Positions 1 to 19,221 of a stretch of DNA of 64,000 bases are shown in pieces. Below the pieces are notes generated by a model. The model made no database searches. It was not told where the DNA came from and was given only the letters and a program-made list of their open reading frames with translations. Every line of letters begins with the position of its first letter. Positions within the stretch are counted from its first letter, which is position 1. The stretch is from Zancudomyces culisetae HAW-14-8 (lineage: Eukaryota; Fungi; Kickxellomycota). The position numbers and the translations under genes were made by a program. The stretch lies in the NCBI GenBank assembly GCA_052426225.1, contig JBNJNM010000011.1:4340001-4404000 (forward strand). The letters are read 5' to 3'.

Positions 1-176
1 TTCTATGGCGCTTGCATCTAGGTTTAGTACTTTTTCAGCTCCTATTTTATTAGCAAGGATATTCACTAAATAAACTCATCTTAACGTAGATATAATTCAG
101 CTAATTTACATATTTTTATCTTGTACACTTGTAAACACTTTTCTTTTGTTATCATTCTAGGCCTACGACCTTAATA

Positions 177-566
177 TTATAAAAAAGTTTTTAATCCAGC
201 ATCACAATCATTACCTTCACTCATAGTCCCATCACTTGCACGTTTATTATTTTTAATGTTAGTATCCTTACTATCAATATATTCTCTCCCCCATTCTGCG
301 TATCCACTTTTAGAATCTTTTATACTGTCAAGTATTTTTTTACTCGCTTCGATGGAATGACTGTTTTCTTTGTGTAATCCAGACTCAGACGATGCTGATT
401 TTTGACTGTTAGACCATTGATTGTTGTTTATATTCCCCTGGACACTATTAAGACTATCTTTAAGATTATGTTTATCTAGCTCGCTAGAACTTGCTAGCGT
501 TGTTGTTGAACATATTATTAGGGCAGTTGCAAGTACTTTCCCAAAACTAACTGTATTCGGCTTCAT
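177..566 (-). CDS. small putative secreted protein (129 aa), Ser/Asn/Lys-rich, unknown function
   Basis: ATG-initiated ORF with signal-peptide-like N-terminus (MKPNTVSFGKVLATALIICSTTTLA); no family recognised. Confidence 0.5.
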   Translation of the reverse strand: MKPNTVSFGKVLATALIICSTTTLASSSELDKHNLKDSLNSVQGNINNNQWSNSQKSASSESGLHKENSHSIEASKKILDSIKDSKSGYAEWGREYIDSKDTNIKNNKRASDGTMSEGNDCDAGLKTFL

Positions 567-2079
567 GATTTATTGCAGTAATACTATCAATATTCAATTT
601 CAATATTTAAGAATCCCGGATTTGTCTTTGTCTGTATTACAAGCAATTACCAGGTAGAGGAACACTGATGTGCTGAGAAAGGTTAGTACGTTTTATGTTC
701 TGAATATACCTATCCTCTCGAGTATTTACTGCTATTATTGTAAGTATAATGAGCGATTACTTTCTTTTGGTGTTTTTAACCAAGTACAGTCATATAGATT
801 ATTTCAATACTAAAGAGAGATGATATTTAAAAAAAGTATGAGAAGGAATGAAAGGAAGAAAGGAGAATATATATTGATTAACAGTGTTGTGAGTATTTGA
901 ACTTTTGAGTAAAGTCCGCTAAAAAAACTGGATAAGCCTTTCAAATTTTTAATAATTATATTGATCAGCAAGGTTGCCTTTATAACCCAACCAATTTACT
1001 GTTTAGACTCTAGATATGTTGGTTGGTCTCGCTATAAGATATACCCACTACCCTTGCACATTCCTTTTTGTATGCATATGAGCAGTTTATCATTCTGTGA
1101 CAAAAAAACTAGCACGAAGGTTACTGGACCTTGTGTTAGCTATAAATGATATGATAGGATTTGCAATTCTTTTTTTAAATTATGTTACAAAGTATCCTAA
1201 AGTTGCTGAGCACAGTGGCGATACCCCCCTAACCCTCTTCGTTATTACCAAGGAAAAGTTCTCTAGAAACTACTTTTTAATATAACGTGAGCATTAGACA
1301 TAATACATATAACCTTTAAAACATACTAGTGCAGAAACAAAGCAGATCAAAGTTTTTTTTCAAAAAAAAGCTGTTTAAAACGACATTTGCCTATAAAGTC
1401 TTTATTATGCATGTTCCAGGACATAACCCACATACTTTAATATTGTTGCGAGATTCTAGTTCATTTACTTTTTTAAAATACACATAAATTGTTGATCAAA
1501 ATTCCAAATCTGCAAATTCTATTTGCTATATGGCTCTGCTTTTTTTTTGCCTCCCCTTAATATCCCACCTGTCAAAAAATGGGATTTATTATAAAAGTTC
1601 TTTTTCATTCACAAAAACAGTAAGACTAGGCTGGGCTGAACTGGACAATAGAACTGAAAAGTTCAATAGTCTTGAATCATATGTTTAAAGCTACATTTAA
1701 CTTAAAGGTTACCCCAATATCTAGTACCCAAAAACATGTTCTTTACATTCAAGTATTTTCATTATAGTTCGCCGTCATAATTATGTAGGCTAAACTGGTT
1801 TGATCAACTCAAATGCGGTTGTAGCTTTGAATGCGTTTGCACACGCTTGCACCATTAGAGACAGAGAAGTGAAAAAATGTAGTATTTTGTAAATCTTGTG
1901 GAGTTATGAGCTAGGCCCAGCTATAGACCCACATACACATTAAGTTGACAAGTTTCAATTTATACCAATTCTTTTTTTGCCATGGATATTTCCAATAACT
2001 TTGCACTCTTTGTCAATAACAGATATACATTATTTTCGTTTATCAATTCGCTAGATACCACCCCCTATGCTCAGCAAAA

Positions 2080-2153
2080 CTAAAAACGCTAAAAACACTA
2101 AAAACGCTAAAAACACTAAAAATACTAAAACACACTAAAACACACTAAAACAT
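2080..2153. repeat. minisatellite (CTAAAAACR)x5 followed by (CTAAAACACA)x3
   Basis: direct reading of tandem 9/10-mers. Confidence 0.85.
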
Positions 2154-3618
2154 ACTTGAGGATCCTAGAATATATAACCCATAATACTGAATCCGACGAA
2201 CAATTATAGTAAAAAGTTGTACTAGTTTAAAACGATAGCGTATCTATTTTTCCGCGACTAGAACGCTTATTCCCAGCGAGGCTTAAAAAATGCTATAATA
2301 TATTGTGGTAGGCTAGTTAAAATGGGCGGTGAAAAAATTATTTTTATTTGGTGTAGATGGGGGGGGGGGGATAAGAGCAACTGTGAAACTTACAAAAAGC
2401 TACTTTTACCTGTTTATTCTAGCAAGTTGGTGTGAATCAATGGTATATAATTACCCGAACTATTTTATATTTATAAGGATATAATGTGTATCTTAAAGTA
2501 AGCTGCACTTGTGCTGATAGTATCACGAGCCAGCTACACTAACTGCAGGAAATAGACTGTACAAAATAGTGTTGGGCGCTAATCCCTTTACAAGCCTGTA
2601 GATGGCTGGCAGAAGCAAACATAATCTTAAATATGCTTTTCCCCAGAAGTTTTGTAAACAGAGTAAGCTAAGCTTTGCAATAATGTTACATAAATAATAC
2701 ATAAAAACAAGATGTTACAAGAGTACGTATGAGAAGTAGTGGTTCGAATCCAATTTGACCCATTTACTCACAATAATATTATTTCAAGGGGTTGCTGATA
2801 TCAACTGACAAGATACCAAAAACACTCTTTAATTGGTTTTGTTTATAAAAAGAAGGCCACACTGGTAGCTGAAAAGTAAAATATTTTCGTGTAGTTTTGA
2901 TGTGTTTGAATTTTGTATTCCGATTACAATTTAAAAAAGCAGTACCCAAATAGCCAAGACTTCATTGTATGGTTGGAATTATGTAAATATTGCTGAAACG
3001 CAACTCGAAAGCGGTATGTGATAATTCACGATTATATCTTTTTATGCGATTTGTAATTATGGATATGATAACACATCCATTCACTGTTTATGATGCTTGA
3101 TTGGCTATCTGTGGAAAAATTGCCAACACCAAAAGCAAAAAGAAAACAAACACCTTTTTTAAATAGCGAAAATAAACACAGAAAAAAAATTAAAGGACAA
3201 TGGAAATGCTTGGAAATCAAGTATTTTGGGAAGGGGGAAATAAACTACAATGCAATTCGACAGGGAATTTCAGAGTTAGTGGTGGCAAGAAAAGAAGGAA
3301 GCTTTGAGGTGCATGTTTGAGTTTATTGGGTAGAAAGCAAGGATTATGTCTAAAGGAGTGTGCTTTATATTACACAATTTTGCACTTCGGAATTTAGCTG
3401 TCTCGGCAGTTGTTTTTTTTAAAGAGTTTCTTCTAGTCAGCGAAAATCGCGAATTTATATACAGAGACATAATTTCGGCAGGTTTAAAAAACAAACAATC
3501 CAGCAAAGCAAAAAAGTTTTCATTACTCTAAAAATTATTCACCACGAGTAAACAAACATCAAACTAAACAAACATCAAACTAAACAATAATCAAAATAAA
3601 CGTAGTACACAATCAACA

Positions 3619-4498
3619 ATGGGATTAGGTGAAGAGATCGCATCGAGAAGCCTTTCGATATATGCACAATGGATGGGTCTACTATCTGCCATACTACTGA
3701 TACTATTTGGAGCTGTGTTCATTCTCTCTGACACCCTTTTCAGAGTTTTGGCATTGTAAGTGTAAAGCTACATGTATATATATAATATCAAAAACAGCAA
3801 ACATCATTGGTATTAAAAAAAATTAAAACACCTATCATAGAATAATTGGGGCGCTTTGTTTATTGATGGAGGTTACGTTCCTATCAAATGTAAGTGTAAA
3901 CATAAGGTATATTTTGAAAAAAAAAAGAATTCTAACCCTAAACTCGAATTATACACGTAGCTTGTTTTCAAAAATAAACTGTAAGTTGAAACGATAAATA
4001 AGATGATCACTTTTCTAATCTATGATCTGTATTGCATAACTTTTACAATAACATTTATAATCTTAATTTAAGCTCGCAAAATATATAAAAATAGAAGTTC
4101 AGATGATTCAGCACTGGTAAGATACAGATCATGGGTCAGATTTCTCATTTATTTGGTGTAAGTATTTTGTTTATTTCGGTTGAGATTTTTTAATAACCTA
4201 TATATAAATTTCCTGAAGTATGTAAAATAATGTCTGGTTGAATATAGGTTTGCGGCTATAATGTGGACGGCAGTTAGCAGGGGCAGTGCGTCGCTAGTAT
4301 TTGGGTCAATCGCATTGACTTTTGCAACTCTCTTCTATTGTAAGTTTGACGTTATCTGATGCTACCTTTTTCAATGCTATTTTATCTCAGTTATCGCCCT
4401 ATTCTCACCTGTTCTTCTTTTTTAAAAAAATAGTGCTGAGTGCTGTGTTCAAACAAGAGCCACTTACATCACGAATGTTGGGTGGTACAGGTGTATAG
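3619..4498 (+). CDS. TVP18: Golgi membrane protein Tvp18, 6 exons
   Basis: Manual splicing (3619-3755, 3841-3889, 3961-3980, 4095-4157, 4248-4339, 4434-4498; GTAAGT donors) gives MGLGEEIASRSLSIYAQWMGLLS...YRSWVRFLIYLVFAAIMW...KQEPLTSRMLGGTGV, typical of Tvp18; absent from the ORF track. Confidence 0.85.
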
Positions 4499-5175
4499 AA
4501 GAATCAACTTTGACTATTTTGCCTTATGGTTTCAAACAGAGAACCCCCAAAAGCGTGGTTTGCGTGCAATGCCGTTCAAATAGCTCATCAATTTACAAAC
4601 CAGCATTTGTCTTTCTTTTATTGTTTTTGCAACAAGGTTTTTAGAAAAAAACTTAAATAAATTTGTACCTGTATCACTGGTAGTGTCAAACTAACAGCCA
4701 AAATAAGAAAAGTGGATCGATAAGAAGCAAGCTGTTCGATTGAAGTCGGGCTCTGTGTTTTTAGTTATCCTGTAGCCCAATAAGGGTTCAACGCCTGTTT
4801 GCCTGGATTATGAGTGTTTTTAGAATTATATTTAGGTAGAGCAAACTAAACAAGCTATGTGACACAGAAAATACATATTCTCACTTGGAACAGACAACAG
4901 TCTTAAGTCCTAATATATGTAGTAGAAGGGGATCTTCGCACCCATGCTCCTTGCACACTCCCTAAAAAGGGGGCGATGAAACACAAAATACCGAAACCAA
5001 CAAAATACAATAGGGATTGTGCTAGAAAGTATGTAAGCACATACTAGCTTTAAGTATCAATAGCAATATTCCGTTAGCAATTCGGCATTTGAAAAGAACG
5101 ATAAAAATGTACAAAAATTAAAATTGAAACAAGTGATCAAAAGTAAATGCCAAATAAGTCCTTTAAAGGCAGCTA

Positions 5176-6361
5176 TTACATCTTGAACAAAGCTTCCCAT
5201 CCTTTTTTTAGCTGCCCGATGTGATCTTTGGTACAAATATCAATATCAAGCCCTTGTGAGGCGGCTCTAGACGGCGATCCTACTCGAAAGAATGCTCCAG
5301 TACCCGCTTCAGCTGACAGAATGGTGTTTGCTAAACACAGACCCTTTTTTTTTACACGGGCTATCTCCTCACTATGTCGAGTTTTTGAGCTATAAGAAAC
5401 AATAACATCGAAACGATTTGTTAAACTACAGAAACACGTATACAAAAGATATCAGTATTAATGTTTTGGTATTTTTGTTACTTTTTCAGTTCATGTATAG
5501 TTTCATCGGTTTCCGCTATTTGGCTGTCCATTATCCTTTTCAAAGATTCCTTTGCCTGTTCAGCATAAATAGTAACTAGAGTTCAAACAACATATTATAT
5601 ATGTATATCGTAAATTCCAATCCAAAGCATGAAATATACGTACCTGAAAGTATCTACAGTGGTTAACCATTGCCGAAATGTTGGAAAGCGTATTTTGAAT
5701 TTGTGCAAGCTGCGGACCAACCTACAGTAGAAAAAAAAACTATCAAAATCAACCAGAATCTGGGATTACAAAATGATAAAAAGATCTGGAAAACATGATA
5801 TTAAAAACTAACCAGCTCAGGATTATCCACGGTCACACCCAAAAACTCAACATACTCATACAGTACTCTGTCAATTAATTTACACAATATCTCGGCGCTG
5901 TTTTCTATAAAAGATGACAATTTAACGTAAAGGTCTTGTCCTTAGCTATTTAATAGTAAACAAAAAAAATGAAAGTATATCGATTTACCATTTTGATTCT
6001 CCAAAAGAATTTCGTTTATTTTTGCATTAAGCACATCCTTTTTATTGCTCAACTAAGGTTTTGAAAGAATGTTAGTTTGTAAAAACTCAAATACGTACTA
6101 TGTACTGTTTTTTTTTAAAAAAGAGATTGGATTTAGACGTAGAGTATAAATCGGAAAAAAACTTACGGAAAACGACCGGCCAAAAATAGTATATTCATCG
6201 CTATCTGGTGGTGTAGGTGGTACCAAATACCGCAGCTCCTTATTTTCCTGTATTCCTCGAGTTGTCTTTGATTTTAGTAGTTCCAAGTTCTCACTGGTAA
6301 AATATGAGTAGTGGTAGGGCGGAAATGGAAAGGCGGTAGATAGACTCTGATTTTTATCCAT
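5176..6361 (-). CDS. MED7: Mediator subunit 7, multi-exon
   Basis: N-terminal STAFPFPPYHY..F..EN...L.PP.PP...Y.IFG motif; internal exons give ISAMVNHCRYFQ/AKESLKRIMDSQI (Med7 N.YRP.QARE.L equivalent); last exon is in the frame of ORF 5176..5445. Confidence 0.8.
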
Positions 6362-7638: not shown

Positions 7639-8319
7639 ATGGTTGCACATTTATCCAAGGCTAACGGTGTTGCCGCAACACCAACAGAGCTTTTGCTGGC
7701 ACAATCTTTGACTGACCTCGAGAAGAGCGTTCCAGATCTCAAGAAGGATCTTAGACCAATCCAGATCTCTGCCGCCAAAGAGGTACGTATCAGTTGTTTT
7801 GCATTTGAAGAGGTTAATATATCAGGTGGAGTTTTGTTGTATGTGCTATCGGTTACTGATATTAAATGAATTTCCGCTATAAAATAGATTGAAGTTGGAC
7901 AAGGAAAGAAGGCTATTGCAGTCTTTGTACCAGTTCCACTCCTCAAGCAAACACGCCGCGTTCAACAGCGCGTAACCAGAGAGTTGGAAAAGAAATTCTC
8001 CGACAGCAACGTAGTGTTCATTGCTGAGCGCAGAATCTTGCCACGCCCAACCCGTAAGTCTCGCCAGAAGCAAAGCCGTCCACGCTCACGAACTTTGACT
8101 GCTGTCTACGAAAAGATCTTGGAAGACCTTGTCTACCCAAGTGAAATTGTTGGAAAGCGCACCCGTGTAAAGGTTGATGGGTCAAGAACCACCAAGTGTT
8201 TCTTGAGCAGCAAGGACGCCACTAACGTTGGTTACAAACTAGATACCTTCTCAACTGTTTATAAGCAACTCACTGGAAAGGATGTTGTTTTTGAATTTGA
8301 TCAAGACCAGGCCTTGTGA
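7639..8319 (+). CDS. RPS7: 40S ribosomal protein S7 (eS7), intron 7783-7887
   Basis: ISAAKE|[17 protein letters not shown]...RELEKKFSD...[28 protein letters not shown]; GTACGT...ATAG intron. Confidence 0.97.
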
Positions 8320-8941
8320 TTTAGCCCTTTTATACCTATTCCATAATAAGACTTGTCTTTATGTTTTCTTAATATATATAAACTTTATAACATTAGTTTA
8401 ATAAACATCGTAAAAAGTGTACACGAAGGCTTAGGTGTTATATTCAATAAATATTGGAATAACAAGCTACACATACAGGAGAGGAAAGAAAAAGTACAAA
8501 GAGCAACCATGAGCAACTACTATCTACTCAAAGACAGAAATACACCGCTGTTGATGAAAAAGATGGTAATTAGGTCGATAGTCATTGCGGTCGCTGGGTA
8601 TGGAGGTGAAATGTTCGGCATGTCTGAAGCAAGGGTAAAACCGATACAGCAAGCCGTGGACAACACATTAAGAATAGCCATGGGAGTGGGATATATAGCA
8701 ATAAAAAAACATAAGAAAAAACATAAAAAGATAACAAAAAGATAACAAAAAAAGTTATAAAAAACCCAAAAAACATAGTAAAAAGTACCCAAAAGGTCAT
8801 AAAAAACTCATAAAAAACACGTCTAAACCGAGATTAGTACTGATCTCAACACATTTAGTCCAACTGAACATAAATTTAAACCCAAATCTACCAAATTTAA
8901 CTGATCCAAAAACAAAAAAACCAAGAAACGTCTGCGAAGAT

Positions 8942-10573
8942 ATGGCATCAACGCAGACGAAAGAAAAGTCTTACGCGCAAACTGCGCAAAGTGGCAGCTA
9001 CCAAGCTGCAAGGGGAGGAAGAGCGGTGCTCTACCAACAATACTCCGTCCTATACTGGGTCGATGAGAGACCCAATGTAGGAAACATGATGGTATGCAGA
9101 ACTAGAGATGAGCGAAAATTCGCCATCAGAACTAGAAGTATCAATGAGAACTATGACGCGGCAGTGAGAGAGATATCTGATACCTTAAAAGATTTTGAAA
9201 TCTCATTTGACCAAGATAGAGAAAGAGGCGTCCTGTTTGTCTGGTTCACAACACTGGAAGAAGCAGAAGAGGCCAGAAAAATTGAGGAAACAATAACAGG
9301 AAAGGAGCTAAACCTGTATAACACTTTCCAACATTCAGAAAAGACGAAGGTGGTAACTATACCATCCTTTAAGAATGATGAAATACATGGCTTTGTGAAG
9401 AATTTGTACGAAGAGCTAAGTCAGTATGGTGAAGTTGCAGATATAATGGCACTGAGGGTGCCGGGCAACAACCATTTCTTTGTCAATAGCTTAAAAGTAT
9501 TGATTAAGATGCACGACTTAGCCATATTGCCCACCACGTTAGTAGTAAAAGATGAGAAGGTCAATCTTATCTGGGATGGGGCCCCAGCTTCATGCACATA
9601 CTGCAAGAAGGAAGGCCACTGGAAAAGCGAGTGCCCTGAACTGGCAAAACTAAGGAAAAGAGGCAGACCGGACAAGTACAGGGAGATGATGAACATCATC
9701 GAAAAAGGCAAAAACCAGATCGAACAAGAGCGACAAAAAGGGAGCGAACAAGAAAATCAAAAAGTAAAGGAAAGAACAAAAGAAAAGGGACGGGTAAAAG
9801 ACCAAGCCTCAGCACAACCACAACCACAAGAACAGAAGGGAAAACAAAAAAAAGATCGAGTCTCAGCTCAACATCAGGAGCAGAAAGAGGTACAACAAGA
9901 AAAAGAAATGGTGAACACAAATTTTATTGATAACTACGAAAACCTTATGGATGAAGGATACGACTCGGAAATACAAAAAAAAAAGCAAGAACAAGATGAA
10001 GAGGAAGTTCTAAGACAAGAACATGAGCTGAAACAAGAAAACATGGAAGTGGAAAATATTATTAATGATGTTCTTTTTAATAACAACATAATCAGGAAAA
10101 AAACAAACACACAAAAATATAAAATATTGAAACAAAAAACAAACAAAAAAAACAACAAACAAAAGAAAGTTAAAGAGGACAAAGCATTCTTAATACTCGC
10201 GCAGAAGATTGCAAATAAAGAAAAGGAGGAAGCTATAAGAACCGAAATAAATATACTTACGTTGGAAGGGGAAGTGGCAATGGAAACACAACCACAGGAG
10301 CAACAACAAGCACGGGAACAACACCAAGTACAAGAACAACACCAAGTACAAGAACAACACCAAGTACAAGAACAACACCAAGTACAAGAACAACAGCAAG
10401 CACAGGAACAGAATCAAACGCAAAACCAGCAAGAGGCACCACACGGCGAGGCGGAAGACAGCGGAACCGGAAAACCTCCGGATCAAGACAACAGCAATCA
10501 AATCGGTCCCAGCATCCATGATGCGGAGATGGAGGAAGACCCTCCTTCATCTCCGATAAATGTAATGGATTAA
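8942..10573 (+). CDS. LINE ORF1p: RRM-like region, CCHC zinc knuckle, long Q/E/K-rich tail
   Basis: CTYCKKEGHWKSEC = CX2CX4HX4C; LSQYGEV RRM-like segment; lies upstream of ORF2. Confidence 0.92.
   Translation: MASTQTKEKSYAQTAQSGSYQAARGGRAVLYQQYSVLYWVDERPNVGNMMVCRTRDERKFAIRTRSINENYDAAVREISDTLKDFEISFDQDRERGVLFVWFTTLEEAEEARKIEETITGKELNLYNTFQHSEKTKVVTIPSFKNDEIHGFVKNLYEELSQYGEVADIMALRVPGNNHFFVNSLKVLIKMHDLAILPTTLVVKDEKVNLIWDGAPASCTYCKKEGHWKSECPELAKLRKRGRPDKYREMMNIIEKGKNQIEQERQKGSEQENQKVKERTKEKGRVKDQASAQPQPQEQKGKQKKDRVSAQHQEQKEVQQEKEMVNTNFIDNYENLMDEGYDSEIQKKKQEQDEEEVLRQEHELKQENMEVENIINDVLFNNNIIRKKTNTQKYKILKQKTNKKNNKQKKVKEDKAFLILAQKIANKEKEEAIRTEINILTLEGEVAMETQPQEQQQAREQHQVQEQHQVQEQHQVQEQHQVQEQQQAQEQNQTQNQQEAPHGEAEDSGTGKPPDQDNSNQIGPSIHDAEMEEDPPSSPINVMD
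10316..10387 (+). repeat. 18-bp coding tandem repeat x4 (EQHQVQ) in ORF1
   Basis: GAACAACACCAAGTACAA repeated 4 times. Confidence 0.9.
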
Positions 10574-10802
10574 CATCCTATTCAAGTAACAGAATTACAT
10601 CATTATAACAACAACAACACAAACAAAAATAACAACAAATATCATAACTGATAAACTACTGGTACTCAACATACCAGAATTGTCTCAGAAAACTGTAAAA
10701 TATTTTTTTTCGTTCATCACAAAAATCGAAAAAAAAAATCTACACGTCAAAAAAATTAAACAGAAAAATAAATCTTACCGCTTCGAAATCCAAAAAATCG
10801 AT

Positions 10803-13800
10803 ATGTCCTTGATTCGATTGTCCGCCCTAAAAAAATTGGAGTTGGAAAAAAAATTAAAGTGTATACTAAAAGTTGAAGAAAATAAAAATGAAAGAGAGAA
10901 AAATTTAAAAAACAAAAAAACAAAAAATTTATACCAAAAAAAAATTGAAAAAAAAAATGAAAAAATTAACCTAAAAATAATGACATACAACGTATGCTCA
11001 ATAAAAAATAAAAAATATGAATTAGATTATTTTTTAACCAAAGTAAATCCAACCATACTATGCTTGCAGGAGACCCACCTGCAGGAGAAGTCTGGGAGGA
11101 TGAACATAAATGGCTACACATGTGTAGAGTCAAAAAGGCCGACACTAAAGACGGGTTCTGGTCTTCTAGTGGGGGTAAAAAAAAATATTGGCTGGCACAT
11201 AGAGGAGTATAAAAATAATAATACCTGGATGGCCGCAAAAATACATGGATATACAGAAAAGGAGCATAAAAGACTGGAAGTGATGGTAGTGAATGTACAC
11301 ACGCCACACAAACCAAAAGAAAGAACTATGATGAAGAAGGAGGTAGAGGACTTTATCAACAAGGAATACGGGAAAAATAAGGAAATAAAAATAATACTAT
11401 GCGGCGACTTCAATATGAGGACAAGTATAGTAACCCCTTGGCTAAAAAAACTCAGGTGTATAGTCAGGAGAGCCCCGACAAGGAAACGAAGCGGGACAAG
11501 GATAACAAAAAAGCGACTGAAGAACACCATCGACCACATCTTTTATACCCCCACAGTAGGACAATTCGTGACAACAAAACTACACAAAAAAATTGACCTC
11601 AGCGACCATCTGGCTATTACAGCCAACTTTACCATTGAGGAAATTAAACCAGAGCAGCAAAAAAAAATTGTCAACCGGAAACTATTGGACCAAAAATCAG
11701 AACTGTTCAGAACTCACAATAAATTTTCAATTTTGACATCTCTTAACGAAACTGACGAACTAATCAGTGAAACCGTCAATGAGACTAAAAAATTGATGGA
11801 TAAGATGACAAGAAAAAATAATCCAAACCCAAAAAATAATGAGAAATTGGCCGAAAAAAATTCCGAAGCCAAAAAAAATCAACATTTTTTAAGTAAAAAA
11901 ACGCGAAAAATGATCAAACTTCGTTGCAAATTGTTCAAAAAAATGCTCAGAACTTGTGATGAACACGAGAAAGAGCTGTTTTATAATGACTACGTCCAGA
12001 TGAAGTCCAAAACTACAAAACTGATCAAAAGTGACCAAAAATTACATAAAAAAAAGGAGTTAGTTAAACTATGCGAACACATCAAAGGCAATGATGCCAA
12101 GACGATGTGGAGATGGTTAAAAATGAGGGCTCTAAATAAAAAATCTGTTTTCAATAATGGAGGAGTCCTGGATGAATCAGGAAGGGAGATAACAGAGGAA
12201 GCAGAAAAACTCAAAGTATGGATAAAACATTTCTACAAGCTATCGAAGAATGAAAACTCAGCATTAAACACAATCCCAGAAGAAAGAGAGGAGGAAGTGG
12301 ACTACTTCAGAGAATGCGACGAAGAGCCAACATGGACAGAAATAAAAGAAGCACTCAAGGAGACACCGAGAAATAAAGCAGCTGGAGAGGATGGCATTCC
12401 AAGCGAAGTTTGGAAAAGTACACAAAGCGATGATGATGCAGAATCGGAACTTGCAGTACTTTTATTAACCATAATTAAAAAATTCTGGAATAATCCAAAG
12501 TTAAACAGTGAAAACAATACTAGCGTAATCGTTCCTATCTTCAAAAAAGGAAACACTAAAGACCCAAACAATTATAGGGGGATTTCGCTAATCCCAACCA
12601 TAACCAAACTTATAGCTAAAATAGTCGCTAATAAATTAAGATTAATAGATAATAGACATATATTATTAGCAAAAGAGCAAGCGGGATTCAGAACACTGGA
12701 GGAATGCGTAGCTCAAGCTACAGCTCTATACGAAATTATAAAAAGGCGAAAAATTAATAATACAAAAACCATAATTTGTTTTATTGATTTTGAAAAAGCC
12801 TACGACAAAGTGCAACACAATTTATTATTCAAAAAATTAAAAATGAACAAAATAAATGGTAAATTGCTAACAGTAATTAAAGAATTATACGCTAACGCAA
12901 AGATAAAAGTGAGGGTAGGAAATGGATTATCGGAGGCGATGAACTTCGAAAGAGGTGTTCGCCAAGGATGCCCAGCCTCACCAATGCTTTTTGATATTTT
13001 TATCAACGATATATTTGAAGGAATGGAGGGAATAGAAGTGCCAGGGATTCAAGAAAAAATTCCGGGACTACTATTTGCAGACGATACAGTTTTATTGTCA
13101 GACACTCCAGAACAGATGCAAGAAGCACTTAACATGATGCAGCAATGGTGTCAGAAGTGGGACATGAAGGTGAATGCTAGCAAGAGTGCGATTATGACAG
13201 TTGAAGCAGTGAATAGAACAAGCGACGAAAATAACAATAATATTGAAATTACGATTCCAGAATACTTTTTGGGAAATGCAAAAGTACCAGAAGTAGATGA
13301 ATATAAATACTTGGGTGTTATATTCAATAAATATTGGAATAACAAGCTACACATACAGGAGAGGAAAGAAAAAGTACAAAGAGCAACCATGAGCAACTAC
13401 TATCTACTCAAAGACAGAAATACACCACTGTTGATGAAAAAGATGGTAATTAGGTCGATAGTCATTGCGGTCGCTAGTTATGGAGGTGAAATGTTCGGCA
13501 TGTCTGAAGCAAGGGTAAAACCGATACAGCAAGCCGTGGACAACACATTGAGAATAGCCATGGGAGTGGGCAGATCGACATGCATGAGGAGATTGCGAGA
13601 AGAATTAAATATAACAGATATTTACAGTAGAACGACCAGAGCTAGAGACAGAGCATTCCACAAATGGAGTGGCATGAAAACATGGATAGCAGATTTAATA
13701 CAGAACCCCTTCAAACACTCGAAGGACACTTGGGTCACAGGGTACACAAGGTGGTCTAACAGATTCAACAGGATCAAGATTGACAATTCACCAACCGGAG

Positions 13801-14426
13801 AGGTAAGAAAAACCAAAGAGACACTCGAGATAAACAACAGGCTGAAAGACAAGTCGAATATTACAAAGTGGATAAAGGAAGTTGGAGCAGGCCGACAAAG
13901 GAATTGGGTCGACTTACAAGCGGCCTTTCCACAGTACATGAAACACATTCTTTTCGTAGGTCGAATTCGAATAGGTCAATTCTGGACCGCCACGAGATTA
14001 GCAAATTCGGGTTTTATAGATCCAGATTACAAAGCCAAATGTCCGTTCTGTAAGAAAGAAGAAAAAGAAACAGTTGAACATTACCTATTAGATTGCAGCA
14101 GATGGGACGAAATTAGGAAGGATTTACTTACTGAATTTATAGATTTTTATAGTTCTTTTTTATCTAGCACGATTTCCGAGTGTGTTGAGCTTCGCAGGAA
14201 AATCGTGGGTAAACTCCTGGGGGAGGAGTTAAAGCTCAAACTACCTGGGATTCTTCGAGATCCAAACGCCACTTGCGTTAGAGCAGTGGTTTCCACAGCC
14301 CGGTTTCTTAACGAGACCTTTTTACCTCGCTACCTAGTGTTGAAAGACATTAGTGTAGTCCCACTCCCCTTGAACCAATGCCCATCGGGTACGGAGACTC
14401 TAGAGAGTCGAAGGGGAATAGGATGA
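10803..14426 (+). CDS. LINE ORF2p: AP-endonuclease, reverse transcriptase, C-terminal CCHC
   Basis: APE motifs TYNV, CLQET, GDFN, IDHI, SDH; RT motifs YRGISL, QAGFR, DFEKAYD, GVRQGCPASP, FADD, YKYLG; CPFC...ETVEHYLLDC. First ATG at 10803; the frame is open from 10590. Confidence 0.96.
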   Translation: MSLIRLSALKKLELEKKLKCILKVEENKNEREKNLKNKKTKNLYQKKIEKKNEKINLKIMTYNVCSIKNKKYELDYFLTKVNPTILCLQETHLQEKSGRMNINGYTCVESKRPTLKTGSGLLVGVKKNIGWHIEEYKNNNTWMAAKIHGYTEKEHKRLEVMVVNVHTPHKPKERTMMKKEVEDFINKEYGKNKEIKIILCGDFNMRTSIVTPWLKKLRCIVRRAPTRKRSGTRITKKRLKNTIDHIFYTPTVGQFVTTKLHKKIDLSDHLAITANFTIEEIKPEQQKKIVNRKLLDQKSELFRTHNKFSILTSLNETDELISETVNETKKLMDKMTRKNNPNPKNNEKLAEKNSEAKKNQHFLSKKTRKMIKLRCKLFKKMLRTCDEHEKELFYNDYVQMKSKTTKLIKSDQKLHKKKELVKLCEHIKGNDAKTMWRWLKMRALNKKSVFNNGGVLDESGREITEEAEKLKVWIKHFYKLSKNENSALNTIPEEREEEVDYFRECDEEPTWTEIKEALKETPRNKAAGEDGIPSEVWKSTQSDDDAESELAVLLLTIIKKFWNNPKLNSENNTSVIVPIFKKGNTKDPNNYRGISLIPTITKLIAKIVANKLRLIDNRHILLAKEQAGFRTLEECVAQATALYEIIKRRKINNTKTIICFIDFEKAYDKVQHNLLFKKLKMNKINGKLLTVIKELYANAKIKVRVGNGLSEAMNFERGVRQGCPASPMLFDIFINDIFEGMEGIEVPGIQEKIPGLLFADDTVLLSDTPEQMQEALNMMQQWCQKWDMKVNASKSAIMTVEAVNRTSDENNNNIEITIPEYFLGNAKVPEVDEYKYLGVIFNKYWNNKLHIQERKEKVQRATMSNYYLLKDRNTPLLMKKMVIRSIVIAVASYGGEMFGMSEARVKPIQQAVDNTLRIAMGVGRSTCMRRLREELNITDIYSRTTRARDRAFHKWSGMKTWIADLIQNPFKHSKDTWVTGYTRWSNRFNRIKIDNSPTGEVRKTKETLEINNRLKDKSNITKWIKEVGAGRQRNWVDLQAAFPQYMKHILFVGRIRIGQFWTATRLANSGFIDPDYKAKCPFCKKEEKETVEHYLLDCSRWDEIRKDLLTEFIDFYSSFLSSTISECVELRRKIVGKLLGEELKLKLPGILRDPNATCVRAVVSTARFLNETFLPRYLVLKDISVVPLPLNQCPSGTETLESRRGIG

Positions 14427-14692
14427 GTTTAGAATATAGATTGTTTTTATTTTTTAGGAACTGTTTATTTTCTAAATAAATTTTTTTTTCTACCGAAAAA
14501 AAAAAAAAAAAGCCATGGGAGTGGGCAGATCGACATGCATGAGGAGATTGCGAGAAGAATTAAATATAACAGATATTTATAGTAGAACGACCAGAGCTAG
14601 AGACAGAGCATTCCACAAATGGAGTGGCATGAAAACATGGATAGCAGATTTAATACAGAACCCCTTCAAACACTCGAAGGACACTTGGGTCA

Positions 14693-16670
14693 TTTCAAAA
14701 AAGGAAACACTAAAGACCCAAACAATTATAGGGGGATTTCGCTAATCCCAACCATAACCAAACTTATAGCCAAAATAGTCGCTAATAAATTAAGATTAAT
14801 AGATAATAGACATATATTATTAGCAAAAGAGCAAGCGGGATTCAGGACACTGGAGGAATGCGTAGCTCAAGCCACAGCGCTATACGAAATTATAAAAAGG
14901 CGAAAAATCAATAATACAAAAACCATAATTTGTTTTATTGATTTTGAAAAAGCCTACGACAAAGTGCAACACAATTTATTATTCAAAAAATTAAAAATGA
15001 ACAAAATTAATGGTAAATTACTGGCAGTAATTAAAGAACTCTATAATAACGCAAAAATAAAAGTAAGGGTAGGAAATGGATTATCGGAGGCGATGAACTT
15101 CGAAAGAGGTGTTCGCCAAGGATGCCCAGCCTCACCAATGCTTTTTGATATTTTTATCAACGATATATTTGAAGGAATGGAGGGAATAGAAGTACCAGGA
15201 ATTCAAGAAAAAATTCCGGGACTACTATTTGCAGACGATACAGTTTTATTGTCAGACACCCCAGAACAGATGCAAGAAGCTCTTAACATGATGCAGCAAT
15301 GGTGTCAGAAGTGGGACATGAAGGTGAATGCTAGCAAGAGTGCGACTATGACAGTTGAAGCAGTGAATAGAACAAGCGACGAAAATAACAATAATATTGA
15401 AATTACGATTCCAGAATACTTTTTGGGAAGTGCAAAAGTACCAGAAGTAGATGAATATAAATACTTGGGTGTTATATTCAATAAATATTGGAATAACAAG
15501 CTACACATACAGGAGAGGAAAGAAAAAGTACAAAGAGCAACCATGAGCAACTACTATCTACTCAAAGACAGAAATACACCGCTGTTGATGAAAAAGATGG
15601 TAATTAGGTCGATAGTCATTGCGGTCGCTGGGTATGGAGGTGAAATGTTCGGCATGTCTGAAGCAAGGGTAAAACCGATACAGCAAGCCGTGGACAACGC
15701 GATAAGAATAGCCATGGGAGTGGGCAGATCGACATGTATGAGGAGATTGCGAGAAGAATTAAATATAACAGATATTTACAGTAGAACGACCAGAGCTAGA
15801 GACAGAGCATTCCACAAATGGAGTGGCATGAAAACATGGATAGCAGATTTAATACAGAACCCCTTCAAACACTCGAAGGACACTTGGGTCACAGGGTACA
15901 CAAGGTGGTCTAACAGATTCAACAGGATCAAGATTGATAATGTACCAACCGGAGAGATAAGAAAAACCAAAGAGACACTCGAGATAAACAACAGACTGAA
16001 AGACAAGTCGAATATTACAAAGTGGATAAAGGAAGTTGGAGCAGGCCGACAAAGGAACTGGGTCGACTTACAAGCGGCCTTTCCACAGTACATGAAACAC
16101 ATTCTTTTCGTAGGTCGAATTCGAATAGGCCAATTTTGGACCGCCACGAGATTAGCAAATTCGGGTTTTATAGATCCAGATTACAAAGCCAAATGTCCGT
16201 TCTGTAAGAAAGAAGAAAAAGAAACAGTTGAACATTACCTATTAGATTGCAGCAGATGGGACGAAATTAGGAATGATTTACTTACCGAATTTATAGATTT
16301 TTATAGTTCTTTTTTATCTAGCACGATTTCCGAGTGTGTTGAGCTTCGCAGGAAAATCGTGGGTAAACTCCTGGGGGAGGAGTTAAAGCTCAAACTACCT
16401 GGGATTCTTCGGGATCCAAACGCCACTTGCGTTAGAGCAGTGGTTTCCACAGCCCGGTTTCTTAACGAGACCTTTTTACCTCGCTACCTAGTGTTGAAAG
16501 ACATTAGTGTAGTCCCACTCCCCTTGAACCAATGCCCATCGGGTACGGAGACTCTAGAGAGTCGAAGGGGGATAGGATGAGTTTAGATTATAGATTGTTT
16601 TTAATTGTTTATAGGAACTGTTTATTTTCTAAATAAATTTTTTTTTCTACCGAAAAAAAAAAAAAAAAAA
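14693..16670 (+). mobile_element. 5'-truncated LINE copy (~1.98 kb) nested in the host copy
   Basis: Starts at the equivalent of ~12540 in ORF2 and ends in A18; TSD GACACTTGGGTCA (14680-14692 / 16671-16683). Confidence 0.94.
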
Positions 16671-18012
16671 GACACTTGGGTCACAGGGTACACAAGGTGG
16701 TCTAACAGATTCAACAGGATCAAGATTGATAATGTACCAACCGGAGAGATAAGAAAAACCAAAGAGACACTCGAGATAAACAACAGGCTGAAAGACAAGT
16801 CGAATATTACAAAGTGGATAAAGGAAGTTGGAGCAGGCCGACAAAGGAACTGGGTCGACTTACAAGCGGCTTTTCCACAGTACATGAAACACATTCTTTT
16901 CGTAGGTCGAATTCGAATAGGTCAATTTTGGACCGCCACGAGATTAGCAAATTCGGGTTTTATAGATCCAGATTACAAAGCCAAATGTCCGTTCTGTAAG
17001 AAAGAAGAAAAAGAAACAGTTGAGCATTACTTACTAGATTGCAGCAGATGGGACGAAATTAGGAAGGATTTACTTACTGAATTTATAGATTTTTATAGTT
17101 CTTTTTTATCTAGCACGATTTCCGAGTGTGTTGAGCTTCGCAGGAAAATCGTGGGTAAACTCCTGGGGGAGGAGTTAAAGCTCAAACTACCTGGGATTCT
17201 TCGGGATCCAAACGCCACTAGCGTTAGAGCAGTGGTTTCCACAGCCCGGTTTCTTAACGAGACCTTTTTACCTCGCTACCTAGTGTTGAAAGACATTAGT
17301 GTAGTCCCACTCCCCTTGAACCAATGCCCATCGGGTACGGAGACTCTAGAGAGTCGAAGGGGAATAGGATGAGTTTAGAATATAGATTGTTTTTATTTTT
17401 TAGGAACTGTTTATTTTCTAAATAAATTTTTTTTTCTACCGAAAAAAAAAAATAAAATAAAATAAAATTTACCGAAAAAAAAACTGACTAGCTCCTTGAG
17501 AACATAGATCAAAAGACGTAGTGCTTATATTGAATTGGGCATTAATAGGTTTCTAAATAGACGTTATCAGAATAACCCGACTATTTTTAACCGACCTAAA
17601 GCACAGAAAACATAAAGGCCTAAGGTTTCATACAAATGGCTTGTAGCACCAAATGTGGCTATATATGGTCACAAGGATTTTTTCTTATGTTTGTATTTAT
17701 TTATGTGTATTGAAAAGCAGTTTGTGTCTGCGCTTTTTTTAACCGCGTTTTTTTGTCAAAATATAAAAGGTAAACCAATTTGACTGGCTAGTATGTGTTA
17801 AAATATGTTTCATCTGATATACGGATAGCGTAGAATCTGGAGCACATGAAATACATTTTTTTGAATACTTCCGTTATATAATGACAACTTCCATCGCCAC
17901 TTTTCGGGACATACTCTTTTTTACACAAGGCTCATTTCCAAAAACCTAGCGTATATGTACTGTAAACAAGAATATTATAGTTGTATATTATTAATAGAGG
18001 TTTAAGTTAAGA

Positions 18013-19221
18013 ATGACACAAGCAGAAGAACCAGAACCAATCTCCAGACTCAGGAAGTATCTACAAATCAAAACTGTCCACCCAAAACCAGACTACGAAT
18101 CTTGCAAAAACTTCTTGATCCAACAAGCCGGAGAAATAGGTTTGGAACATCAGGTAGTTGAGTGTGTAGAAGGCAAACCCATAGTTATAATAAAACTTGC
18201 TGGTACTGACCCTACTCAAAAATCCATTTTATTGAGTTCGCATACTGACGTAGTTCCAGTATTTGAAGACCAGTGGAAGTACGATCCATTTGCTGCAGAA
18301 AGAGTTTTAGAAGGTGATGAGATCAGAATTTACGCACGTGGTGTTCAGGATATGAAAGCACAAGGGATGTGCTATCTGGAGGCGTTCAGAATACTCAAAA
18401 GAGCTGAAAAAAGACTAACCAGAAACGTGTATGCAATATATGCACCTGATGAGGAGATAGGAGGTGCCGATGGGGTGGAAGCACTAGTAGAGACCAAAGA
18501 GTTTGAAGCCTTGAACGCAGGATTTGACCTAGATGAAGGTGGTCTTGGTGTGGGTGACACTGTCATAGCGTTTACAGCGGAGAGGCTTTTAAACGCTGTC
18601 AGGTTTACTGCACACGGGAACACAGGCCATGGAAGCCAATTCATTGAGGGAACTGCAATTGAAAAGCTACTTCCCGTTATGAATTGGATGCTTGCTTTCA
18701 GAGAAGAGGAAAAGGTCAAACTCAACACAATCGAGGGCGACCGGTTTCTATGTCAAGGTGCGGTAACAGCTACAAATCTTACAATTCTGGAGGGAGGGAA
18801 GCAACAAAACGTGGTCCCAGCTACGTTTTCTGCAACGTTTGATATGCGTGTATCTCCGAATAGAGATATCATGGTGCTCAGAAAGACTATACGCGATTTT
18901 GCAGAAAAACACAATGTCCAGTGTACTTTTCTTTCTACCGACTCAGTAAACCCAGTTACCACATGGGACTCAAGCGATCCTTTCTGCGCGTCAATAGAAA
19001 AGGTGTTTGAAAAGCGCATGATTAAGTGGAGTAAAGTCATTTGCTTTGCTGTATCAGACGCCAGACATATTAGGCGCAAAGGAATTCCCGCTATTGGAAT
19101 TAATCCACTAACAAATCATCCCTTACTTCCTCATGACCACAATGAGTATGTTAGAGAAAAGGACTTTTTGGAAGCCATTGATGTTTATGTTGATCTGATT
19201 AGTGGGTTGGCTAATGCCTAG
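18013..19221 (+). CDS. ACY1: aminoacylase-1 (M20A metallopeptidase)
   Basis: SHTDVVP, IYARGVQDMK, PDEEIGG, LDEG, G.TGHGS, HDHNE motifs. Confidence 0.92.
   Translation: MTQAEEPEPISRLRKYLQIKTVHPKPDYESCKNFLIQQAGEIGLEHQVVECVEGKPIVIIKLAGTDPTQKSILLSSHTDVVPVFEDQWKYDPFAAERVLEGDEIRIYARGVQDMKAQGMCYLEAFRILKRAEKRLTRNVYAIYAPDEEIGGADGVEALVETKEFEALNAGFDLDEGGLGVGDTVIAFTAERLLNAVRFTAHGNTGHGSQFIEGTAIEKLLPVMNWMLAFREEEKVKLNTIEGDRFLCQGAVTATNLTILEGGKQQNVVPATFSATFDMRVSPNRDIMVLRKTIRDFAEKHNVQCTFLSTDSVNPVTTWDSSDPFCASIEKVFEKRMIKWSKVICFAVSDARHIRRKGIPAIGINPLTNHPLLPHDHNEYVREKDFLEAIDVYVDLISGLANA

Follow-up and report, generated by a model that had tools for sequence, protein, structure and literature searches.

Nested copies of one retrotransposon family raise the question of what brought them to the same place. 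In a stretch of 64,000 nucleotides from the mosquito-gut fungus Zancudomyces culisetae (hereafter the window), a truncated LINE copy is split by two insertions of its own family (8430-17457). A first-pass annotation, made from the letters alone, had described this array and proposed a preference of the family for its own sequence or locus, with its own ORF2 as a possible target.

Structure of the nested array

Re-mapping gave the features listed in Table 1, for which the inserted long copy served as reference (element coordinates 1-5820 = 8691-14510). All LINE copies of the window are co-oriented. They lie on the strand of the gene for ribosomal protein eS7, and the array starts 110 bp past its stop codon. 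The last exon of this gene matched Pfam Ribosomal_S7e (7888-8316, E=8e-64); over the same stretch, the NCBI entry '40S ribosomal protein S7 [Zancudomyces culisetae]' matched with 100% identity. Both insertions are flanked by target site duplications (TSDs). The first is (A)GCCATGGGAGTGGG with 14-15 bp (right copy at 14511/14512-14525) and the second is GACACTTGGGTCA with 13 bp (14680-14692 and 16671-16683). In host coordinates, 169 bp separate the two target sites, whose equivalents in the long copy are window positions 13557 and 13725. Removal of both inserts and of one TSD copy each restored a host of 1,201 bp, which aligned to the long copy in one gapless alignment with 19 mismatches and an open ORF2 frame. 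The array, its TSD lengths, the distance between the sites, the co-orientation and the exact restoration of the host were thus all confirmed. A TSD of the host copy itself was sought and was not identifiable.

Table 1. Features of the array and its neighbouring genes (positions in the window)
Feature	Position	Strand	Remarks
Ribosomal protein eS7 (RPS7) gene, array anchor	7639-8319	+	first coding exon by eye from ~7639; last exon 7888-8316; stop 8317-8319
AT-rich spacer (eS7 3' UTR or terminator region)	8320-8429	+	110 bp, eS7 stop to first LINE base
Host copy, piece 1	8430-8690	+	element coordinates 4620-4880, ORF2 C-terminal part; 98.1% identity to long copy
TSD 1, left copy	8676/8677-8690		last 14-15 bp of host piece 1; junction read
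Youngest insert, near-full-length family-A LINE (long copy)	8691-14510	+	coordinates 1-5820; 16-A tail
ORF1 of long copy	8942-10573	+	RRM-like + CCHC knuckle; intact
ORF2 of long copy	10980-14426	+	from its ATG; APE endonuclease, reverse transcriptase, zf-RVT; intact
Host copy, piece 2	14511-14692	+	element coordinates 4863-5047; TSD 1 right copy at start, TSD 2 left copy at end
Second insert, 5'-truncated family-A copy	14693-16670	+	element coordinates 3850-5820; 18-A tail
Host copy, piece 3	16671-17457	+	element coordinates 5032-5820; TSD 2 right copy first, degenerate A/(TAAAA)n tail last
Mini-copy, 16 nt	17468-17483	+	last bases of element 3' end + nine A's, directly behind host tail; repeat family D8
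M20 peptidase gene, next host gene	18013-19221	+	Pfam Peptidase_M20 E=7.7e-30; distal limit of stack-bearing intergenic region

The 2-kb copy differed from the long copy at 45 positions in 1,971 bp (97.6% identity) and from the host at 20 positions in 1,202 bp. These SNPs, together with the separate tails and TSDs, uphold the earlier view of separate retrotransposition events and speak against a tandem duplication. Some contigs of the assembly do duplicate others (C19 and C21; C12 and C10 with C6), so that misassembly and tandem or segmental duplication had to be considered. However, a separate poly(A) tail and an exact TSD accompany every insert, the host is restored without gaps, the copies are not identical, other arrays have unique flanks and different TSDs, and the assembly was built from PacBio HiFi reads (PMC12611240). 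An artefact or a duplication can for practical purposes be dismissed.

In agreement with the first-pass annotation, no further family copies were found in the 64-kb window at the DNA or protein level, apart from the mini-copy added here, an older insertion with extreme 5' truncation or else a slippage product. The likely order of events is that the host copy was followed by the 2-kb copy, inserting ~525 bp from the stop codon, and then by the near-full-length copy at ~356 bp.

Family A is a young L1-like LINE family

The inserted family, termed family A, is a young and recently active L1-like LINE family of ~6.0 kb with an APE endonuclease and a reverse transcriptase. Both ORFs of the long copy are intact, but ~155-185 nt of 5' UTR that are present in other copies are absent, and the earlier term full-length therefore needs this correction. 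ORF2 matched Exo_endo_phos (E=1.8e-11), RVT_1 (E=7e-40) and zf-RVT in Pfam and belongs to an APE-type LINE; its nearest relative was a Smittium mucronatum reverse transcriptase annotated as 'jockey' (38% identity). For ORF1, the zf-CCHC match (E=6e-4) was just below the Pfam cut-off, and atlas feature matches to ZCCHC3-like RBD and CCHC clusters (scores 0.91-0.94) identified an RNA-binding protein. Neither Pfam nor the feature matches revealed a DNA-binding or tethering domain, and ORF1 resembles an ordinary RRM + CCHC LINE ORF1. We observed the hallmarks of target-primed reverse transcription, namely A tails of 16-18 nt, 5' ends from -184 to 5448 and, at 14 insertions, TSDs of 11-18 bp. Over its 5,820 bp the long copy matches copies on contigs C15 and C9 with 100% identity and a copy at C11:4154997 with 99.98%.

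The copy behind eL39 carries a 5' transduction. Inside its own TSD are 11 nt that equal the flank of the copy behind eL8. This transduction shows that the transcript of at least one family-A copy began upstream of the element. An Rfam search at E<=1 of an 8.8-kb locus with a full-length copy returned a tRNA gene only, hence no known ribozyme.

Family A lies behind ribosomal-protein genes

Copies were taken from the best-scoring candidates of a genome search, and all copy counts are lower bounds. Twenty-nine of the 31 informative family-A arrays were located in sense behind a cytosolic ribosomal-protein (RP) gene, each of them behind a different one. The occupied genes, each with Pfam support, are uL16, eS7, P2, eS24, uL11, eL8, eL39, uL5, uL29, eS28, uL1, uS13, eL15, uS3, uS11, uL4, uS9, uL15, uS2, uS12, eL20, uL2, uL14, eL24, eL36, uS8, eS8, eL32 and eL37. 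The enrichment is significant (P ~6e-57) even if each insertion is forced behind some gene, and the 95% lower bound of the RP share is 79%. At 23 loci the distance from the stop codon to the first LINE base was 110-728 bp, with a median of 226. Insertion by family A is one-way and takes place ~100-750 bp past the stop codon of a cytosolic RP gene. In every case the template strand of the RP gene is nicked first, so the copies lie in sense. A class of position-specific LINEs at RP-gene 3' flanks, defined by sense insertion within ~1 kb behind the stop codon, takes in 29 of the 31 arrays. Of the initial proposal, the preference for a locus is therefore strongly supported, while a preference for the element's own ORF2 sequence is not.

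In the 23 spacers, no motif or k-mer was enriched over shuffled sequences; common to them were only AT-rich words. One tRNA gene lies 245 bp beyond one array, probably by coincidence.

A compact genome might retain, out of random insertions, only sense copies behind RP genes. With 8,484 genes, the 27-Mb genome is indeed gene-dense (PMC12611240), and selection could plausibly favour terminator-side, sense insertions. Yet thousands of other 3' flanks should be equally harmless, all but two of the 31 arrays are nevertheless at RP genes, and a related LINE family (family B) persists behind many non-RP genes. Furthermore, the four identical or near-identical (99.98-100%) and hence very recent copies are all behind RP genes already, as are all full-length copies of a 91% subfamily. 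Therefore, targeting acts at insertion, and survivorship as the sole cause is very improbable.

The attraction could also come from the 3' ends of the most transcribed Pol II genes in general, with their R-loops, termination complexes or open chromatin, RP genes making up most of this class. The two arrays outside RP genes lie behind an unknown gene and a Stm1/HABP4-like gene, which is typically abundant, and the lower bound of the RP share would also fit a target class of about the 100 top genes. Family B was likewise found in sense, 200-700 bp behind varied non-RP genes. However, it shows this downstream habit without RP enrichment (one RP gene in 17 sampled loci). GAPDH and EF-1alpha, the two highly expressed non-RP controls that were checked, were both empty, although they are normally among the very top-expressed fungal genes. 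With two such controls, RP-specific recognition is therefore not separable from recognition of top-expressed genes; we regard the broader target as possible and rather doubtful. Occupancy of RP genes is itself incomplete, as RPL3 and RPS6 were LINE-free within 1-1.4 kb.

Nested hits lie in gene-proximal copies

Nesting is far above chance. At least seven insertions are inside copies of a family that makes up ~0.44% of the genome (P ~1e-5 to 1e-6, with occupancy doubled), and half of the arrays contain at least two copies. The seven verified nested hits were found twice in the window, at eS28, uL1 and uS13 and twice at uS3. Such numbers would be expected if the endonuclease or the ribonucleoprotein recognised the 3' sequence of its own ORF2, so that copies attract copies anywhere. 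All seven hits fall at element coordinates 4866-5322, and break points near 5155-5172 recur at four loci. But genome-wide mapping of the junctions, while confirming the excess of nesting, showed nested sites spread over ~450 bp of ORF2 (4866, 4917, 5035, 5142, 5251 and 5310 in host coordinates) with unrelated target sequences. Six nested sites and ten sites in unique or other-family DNA had no sequence in common; the latter TSDs were in unique or family-B DNA, and single copies occur in unique DNA behind RP genes. The range 4866-5322 is the part of the element that short truncated hosts contain. The breaks near 5155-5172 lack a downstream host remainder and look like composites copied as one unit and not like insertion hot spots.

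None of the 13 full-length copies was interrupted, though the 3' region of ORF2 is present in all of them at 5 kb from the gene, whereas seven hits occurred in truncated copies (P = 7e-4 if hits followed target length). All verified nested hits affect truncated copies close to the gene. Their insertion points, 241-658 bp past the stop codon, fall inside the 110-728 bp range of primary insertions. In the same zone, at eS24, family A has inserted into the unrelated sequence of a family-B element. Targeting of its own ORF2, as first suggested, is therefore improbable in view of the unrelated sites, the uninterrupted full-length copies, the hit in family B and the distances that fit the gene zone.

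The 14 TSDs (11-18 bp) are unrelated in sequence, as are their flanks, and most begin in an A-rich context. To judge from these junctions, nicking requires no defined sequence and is weakly biased towards A-rich sites, as in L1. Direct head-to-tail junctions, where the next 5' end follows a tail within 0-8 bp, were found at uL16, eS28, uS13, eL32, eL20 and the Stm1-like gene. At least ~90 family-A 3' ends are gathered in roughly 35-40 arrays, which is more clumped than random hits on ~79 RP genes. Such junctions and clumping, the mostly A-rich TSD starts and the mini-copy directly behind the host tail of the window would suit a second layer, in which the RP 3' flank sets the zone and resident copies add attraction through poly(A):poly(T) nick or priming sites or through homology with the incoming RNA. 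Neither window insertion is in an A-run, however; clumping could arise if RP loci differ in their tolerance of insertions (the neighbours of RPL3 and RPS6 are close and convergent), and template jumping of the RNA in a single event could also yield head-to-tail pairs. An added attraction of this kind is a possibility that we consider unlikely overall, if slightly less so than a draw to highly transcribed genes at large.

Nesting is best explained as a by-product of locus targeting combined with the weak A-rich nick preference. An earlier truncated copy would fill the target zone, so that later insertions become nested inside it, as in the window, and others would fall in or beside a resident poly(A) tail and give head-to-tail arrangements.

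Comparison with known LINEs

TRE5 and TRE3 of Dictyostelium discoideum, LINEs of the L1 clade, insert at a fixed distance from tRNA genes. Family A is similar as an APE-type LINE of a compact genome that is directed by position relative to a gene class and not by DNA sequence, with fixed orientation, repeated hits at one locus and 5'-truncated copies with TSDs. It differs in having Pol II RP genes instead of Pol III genes as targets and a broad zone behind the stop codon. TRE-type targeting of Pol III genes was rejected, since the arrays are anchored at RP genes and no tRNA gene is present in the 64-kb window.

The known targets of sequence-specific LINEs comprise rDNA, snRNA, tRNA, microsatellites and transposons, and RP genes are absent from the target classes listed (PMC4640811). 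Like R1/R2 and Tx1-clade elements, family A finds its safe sites at a highly expressed class of genes with many members. R2 is co-transcribed with its host gene, and the transcription start upstream of a family-A element is a comparable trait. In contrast to these elements, family A inserts beside and not inside the host gene and has no defined target sequence. A Tx1/R1-type specificity was rejected on the unrelated TSDs and flanks and the motif-free spacers.

Nested or head-to-tail LINE arrays are known from Zepp in Chlorella, Cnl1 in Cryptococcus subtelomeres and HeT-A/TART in Drosophila. As in family A, 5'-truncated copies of a single family are stacked there in one orientation, both nested and in tandem. 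Those arrays occupy telomeres or centromeres and are interpreted as self-targeting or end-targeting, whereas each family-A array is behind a different single-copy RP gene and gene-distant copies are unhit. Self-nesting of the Zepp/Cnl1 type was rejected on the uninterrupted full-length copies and the primary insertions in unique DNA.

Human L1 prefers poly(A) tails. Its endonuclease prefers T-rich/A sites (PMC1950540). Family A resembles L1 in its APE domain, the variable TSD length, the mostly A-rich nick context and tandem copies that abut tails. Unlike L1, which is dispersed genome-wide, it is confined to RP-gene 3' flanks.

Origin of the array and implications

In summary, the array is most probably a stack of family-A LINEs that was built by targeting of RP-gene 3' flanks. 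The ribonucleoprotein may be tethered by some feature peculiar to RP-gene 3' ends; candidates would be the chromatin, the transcription-termination or the 3'-processing machinery of these very heavily transcribed genes. The sense position could allow read-through transcription of the copies from the RP gene; an indirect hint at this is the 5' transduction at eL39.

Other Harpellales were also considered. A sense LINE ORF2 fragment starts ~150 bp past eS7 in Smittium simulii, and such fragments start 180-370 bp past uS3 in S. culicis; of seven orthologous RP loci in other Harpellales, five had no sense LINE. Tentatively, family A might be a growth-coupled hitch-hiker of the RP regulon. A factor at RP 3' ends would recruit the ribonucleoprotein, read-through from the RP promoter would replace or add to its own promoter, and the habit would be of such an age that LINE lineages of other Harpellales, namely the two Smittium species, have it too.

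We found no published account of such RP-gene targeting by any retrotransposon. If the hitch-hiker reading is true, family A would be the first known case of a retrotransposon homing to 3' flanks within one defined class of protein-coding Pol II genes.

Structure of the nested array behind eS7

Family A is a young LINE of the L1-like APE type. The nested architecture of its array in the window was confirmed by a scan for repeats and by reading across the junctions. There, a truncated resident copy (the host copy) is split by two inserts of the same family. The pieces and target site duplications (TSDs) were mapped and are listed in the table, with element coordinates (1-5820) set by the long insert. 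Excision of both inserts and of one TSD copy each restored the host copy, as proposed in the first-pass annotation; the restored sequence aligns to the long copy without gaps over 1,201 bp, has 19 mismatches and keeps the ORF2 frame open. The 2-kb copy and the long copy differ at 45 of 1,971 positions. The host copy, the 2-kb insert and the long insert are three distinct retrotransposition events, again as proposed. Within the 64-kb window, no further family-A copy was detected at the DNA or protein level, in agreement with the earlier reading.

The long insert has intact ORF1 (CCHC knuckle) and ORF2 (APE endonuclease, reverse transcriptase, zf-RVT). Its designation as full-length is justified for both reading frames, but not for the 5' UTR. 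Other copies have a further 155-185 nt of 5' UTR, and the long insert is therefore slightly 5'-truncated. The likely order of insertion is the host copy, followed by the 2-kb copy (~525 bp from the stop codon of eS7) and then by the near-full-length copy (~356 bp from the stop codon), which is identical or nearly identical to three other copies and hence the youngest. The C-terminal part of ORF1 contains a Gln/Glu/His-rich hexapeptide repeat. An M20 peptidase gene follows the array, and after the array behind uL1 there is a paralogue that shares 76% of its nucleotides across 532 bp. This pair reflects either coincidence or an old duplication of a block comprising a ribosomal-protein gene and its neighbour.

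Coordinates of the features analyzed. Positions refer to the window unless a contig (C) or locus (L) is named.
Feature	Position	Element coordinates	Remarks
eS7, last exon	7888-8316		Pfam E=8e-64
Host copy, piece 1	8430-8690	4620-4880	
Long insert	8691-14510	1-5820	nested event; 14-15-bp TSD at 8676/8677-8690 and 14511/14512-14525
ORF1 hexapeptide repeat	10271-10432		7-9 tandem 18-bp units
Host copy, piece 2	14511-14692	4863-5047	
2-kb insert	14693-16670	3850-5820	nested event; 13-bp TSD at 14680-14692 and 16671-16683
Host copy, piece 3	16671-17457	5032-5820	
Mini-copy, 16 nt	17468-17483		after tail of host copy
M20 peptidase gene	18013-19221		after eS7 array
M20 peptidase paralogue	L012:8331-8858		after uL1 array
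Nested insertion, eS28		5251-5266 of host	
Nested insertion, uL1		5310-5322 of host	
Nested insertion, uS13		4917-4934 of host	
Nested insertions, uS3		5142-5158 of host	two inserts at one site
eL39 locus (L007)	C8:1147583-1156446		5' transduction
eL8 locus (L006), flank matched by eL39 copy	C23:108809-117672		5' transduction
tRNA gene and adjacent LINE 3' UTR match near P2 array	L003:1176-1257 and 1018-1085; C9 near 1284300-1284500		tRNA gene ~245 bp beyond array
Match to LINE 3' UTR near P2 array		5674-5742	69 bp, 90%; beside tRNA gene
Locus with internal fragment (L017)	C12:52986-58385	1914-4307	not counted
Locus with internal fragment (L019)	C6:2815279-2820675	1914-4307	not counted
Duplicated contig regions	C19 vs C21:2.32-2.48 Mb; C12 vs C6; C10 vs C6		
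Family-B loci	C6, C9, C10, C13, C15, C20, C21, C23		L063, L064 full-length; L062, L065-L080

Family A lies behind ribosomal-protein genes

The host copy begins 110 bp beyond the last exon of eS7 and shares its strand. Each locus was oriented by its LINE, and open frames on the upstream sense strand were read and then checked against Pfam. In total, 29 different cytosolic ribosomal-protein (RP) genes were found directly upstream of family-A arrays, in every case in sense orientation: uL16, eS7, P2, eS24, uL11, eL8, eL39, uL5, uL29, eS28, uL1, uS13, eL15, uS3, uS11, uL4, uS9, uL15, uS2, uS12, eL20, uL2, uL14, eL24, eL36, uS8, eS8, eL32 and eL37. Only two of the 31 informative arrays lie behind other genes, one being a Stm1/HABP4-like gene, whose array occurs a second time on a duplicate contig, and the other a gene of no assigned function. 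A locus at a contig end, an internal fragment within a segmental duplication, two diverged 5' fragments and a 5'-UTR-like fragment in another LINE were left out of the 31. Under a generous null model, in which every insertion falls behind some gene and 79 of 8,484 genes encode RPs, 29 of 31 has P ~6e-57; the 95% lower bound of the RP share is 79%. A large cluster at 2.58-2.645 Mb of C21 is not centromere-like and resolves into four RP genes (uL11, uS3, eL32, eL15) with one stack each.

The first-pass annotation had proposed that the family prefers its own sequence or locus. Preference for a locus is borne out by the 29 arrays; preference for its own ORF2 is not supported, none of the full-length copies being interrupted (see below). 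We consider it probable that family A targets the 3' flanks of RP genes, and this reading replaces that of self-targeting. Confidence in any specific mechanism of recruitment is much lower than in the targeting itself. No tethering domain was found in ORF1.

Insertion geometry and nesting

Both ends could be placed at 23 loci, and there the distance from the stop codon to the first LINE base was 110-728 bp (median 226 bp; 78% at or below 350 bp). The spacers are AT-rich, and 7-9-mer counts at these loci revealed no shared motif above shuffled sequences. The 14 insertions with readable TSDs have duplications of 11-18 bp with unrelated sequences, mostly starting A-rich as is typical of L1-type endonucleases. 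The first nick is invariably on the template strand of the RP gene. The specificity of family A is one of position relative to the gene, and not of DNA sequence.

A nested insertion was counted as verified when the host remainder was found and the duplication was present. Nested inserts of this kind occur at five anchor genes (table), with two events each at eS7 and uS3, and their target sequences are unrelated. Six of the seven events were located ~241-658 bp from the stop codon when they inserted, within the range of primary insertions. The event at uS13 lies ~540 bp from the stop codon only if the proximal copy came later, and otherwise ~1.6 kb away. Each of the 13 full-length copies carries the same 3' region of ORF2 ~5 kb from its gene, and none is interrupted (P = 7e-4 if hits scale with target length), with the younger age of these copies as a caveat. 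Moreover, family A is inserted into another LINE, family B, at eS24 and abuts family B at eL8 and uL4. Based on these distances, the uninterrupted full-length copies and the insertion into family B, the best account of nesting is that it arises incidentally when one narrow zone is hit repeatedly, with no need for the element to recognise its own ORF2. Head-to-tail junctions, in which a tail is followed by the next copy within 0-8 bp, are numerous. They fit either nicks made within or next to poly(A) tails already resident in the zone, or jumping between RNA templates. An added pull of resident tails is possible.

Control genes and family B

As controls, further genes were inspected. No LINE was present within 1-1.4 kb of RPL3 and RPS6, both of which have close convergent neighbours, and these empty genes rule out that every RP gene carries a LINE. 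GAPDH and EF-1alpha likewise had no LINE. EF-1alpha was taken separately, as the top locus for the Pfam profile GTP_EFTU_D3 was mitochondrial EF-Tu. The absence of LINEs at GAPDH and EF-1alpha leans against a pure expression-level rule, in a sample too small for a firm rejection.

Family B shares ~39% ORF2 identity with family A and is abundant, with at least 130 candidate 3' ends. In a sample of 17 loci away from family A, its copies follow varied genes at a distance of 200-700 bp and mostly in sense orientation. The anchors include MFS transporters, an ABC transporter, LIM and ankyrin proteins and wall-like or secreted proteins, and only one is an RP gene (eS25). For ~12 independent events, P of the sense bias is ~0.02; some loci form paralogue pairs and could be duplications. 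Since family B is mostly in sense behind varied genes, the habit of inserting in sense into 3' flanks may be a trait of the wider lineage, and its restriction to RP genes may be special to family A. A tRNA gene lies beyond the P2 array, beside a short match to the LINE 3' UTR (table); similar matches of 55-100 bp at 75-82% are family-B tails.

Copy census and assembly

The genome assembly comprises 27.1 Mb in 25 contigs, and the window is C11:4340001-4404000. The eS7 and uS3 proteins encoded beside two of the arrays match Zancudomyces culisetae entries at NCBI with 100% identity. The published PacBio HiFi assembly (27.2 Mb, 35.6% GC, 8,484 genes; PMC12611240) is described without mention of retrotransposon targeting or RP genes. 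Family A has ~90 candidate 3' ends, and its listed copies make up ~0.44% of the genome. Over 5,820 bp, the copies on C15, C9 and in the window show 100% identity. A fourth copy, at C11:4154997, reaches 99.98%, and the four together point to very recent activity. Further full-length subfamilies have 91% and 88% identity, with differences mainly in the 5' half. Divergence of the 91% subfamily is concentrated in this half, where the ORF1 hexapeptide repeat lies. Truncation points at the 5' end are shared between independent loci (4780/4781 three times, 4954-4966 seven times, 5310 twice, 5362/5363 three times and 4346 twice), which suggests stops of reverse transcription, re-copying of truncated copies, or short sub-elements.

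Several loci are present twice with equal scores on different contigs, namely the Stm1-like gene with its LINE pair, EF-1alpha, mitochondrial EF-Tu, GAPDH and the L017/L019 fragment. Haplotigs or recent segmental duplications are thus present in the assembly, and copy counts should take them into account. The L017/L019 fragment was not counted. It is 91% identical to family A, lacks both ends, is not 3' of an RP gene and lies inside a segmental duplication with flanks 94-98% identical. A candidate at C6:175300 was dropped, being only a 5'-UTR-like fragment within a family-B copy.

Transcription from upstream and composite copies

The eL39 copy, a member of the 91% subfamily, carries 11 nt between its own TSD and its 5' end that match the host-LINE flank of the eL8 copy. 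This match represents a 5' transduction, which means that transcription of the source began upstream of the element. It points to the eL8 locus, or to a similar one, as that source. Copies behind P2, uL16 and uL5 have a common 5-11-nt extension leading to a family-B context like that of eS24, and its history is more ambiguous. We infer read-through transcription from the RP gene into the LINE.

At uL4, uS2, uS12 and uL14, a 3'-truncated "host piece" is fused to a complete copy and the downstream host remainder is absent. In composites of this kind (L023, L027, L029 and L033), the 3'-truncated family-A piece is fused upstream of a copy that is 5'-truncated and otherwise complete; several of these pieces end at 5155-5196, and some have only 90% identity. 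Such composites may derive from one read-through RNA copied as a unit or from template switches; they have no TSD that proves copying as a single unit. An Rfam search (E<=1) for a ribozyme in an 8.8-kb locus with a full-length copy returned only a nearby tRNA gene.

Other Harpellales

The closest ORF2 relatives (P0001, P0015, P0017 and P0018) are on 3-5-kb contigs without neighbouring genes. Smittium simulii has at least three LINE ORF2 fragments in sense, starting ~150 bp after eS7. In S. culicis, a sense LINE fragment lies 180-370 bp after uS3, and the contig stops within it. No sense LINE was found at eS7 and uS3 of S. angustum and Furculomyces boomerangus or at uS3 of S. megazygosporum, and the sole find at eS7 of the latter was an RT fragment in antisense at a distance of 2.3 kb. 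In S. mucronatum, the contig stops 435 bp after eS7. These comparisons suggest, but do not prove, that the RP-flank habit extends past one species.

Discussion

In architecture, family A is an ordinary L1-like APE LINE. It has no defined target sequence and is therefore not of the Tx1 or R1 type. It is also not tRNA-targeted like TRE, and it behaves differently from the self-nesting LINEs of telomeres and centromeres. The closest mode is that of position-specific elements, which recognise a class of genes and not a sequence. To our knowledge, the safe harbours of retrotransposons are Pol III genes, rDNA, snRNA genes, telomeres, heterochromatin and Pol II promoters. We found no description in the literature of targeting to RP-gene 3' flanks in fixed sense, and it is absent from the target list in PMC4640811.

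Homing of a LINE in one orientation to the terminator side of ~30 or more RP genes would add a class to the known targets. Such homing implies that the 3' ends of RP genes, or the ends of those Pol II genes that are transcribed most heavily, bear a recognisable molecular mark, and family A is a potential probe for finding it. For annotation, the arrays account for short-read Harpellales assemblies that break just 3' of RP genes, and nested arrays do not necessarily indicate self-recognition. The ordered stacks of insertions provide a natural chronology of element activity, and their position suggests a route by which expression of the element could be coupled to cell growth.
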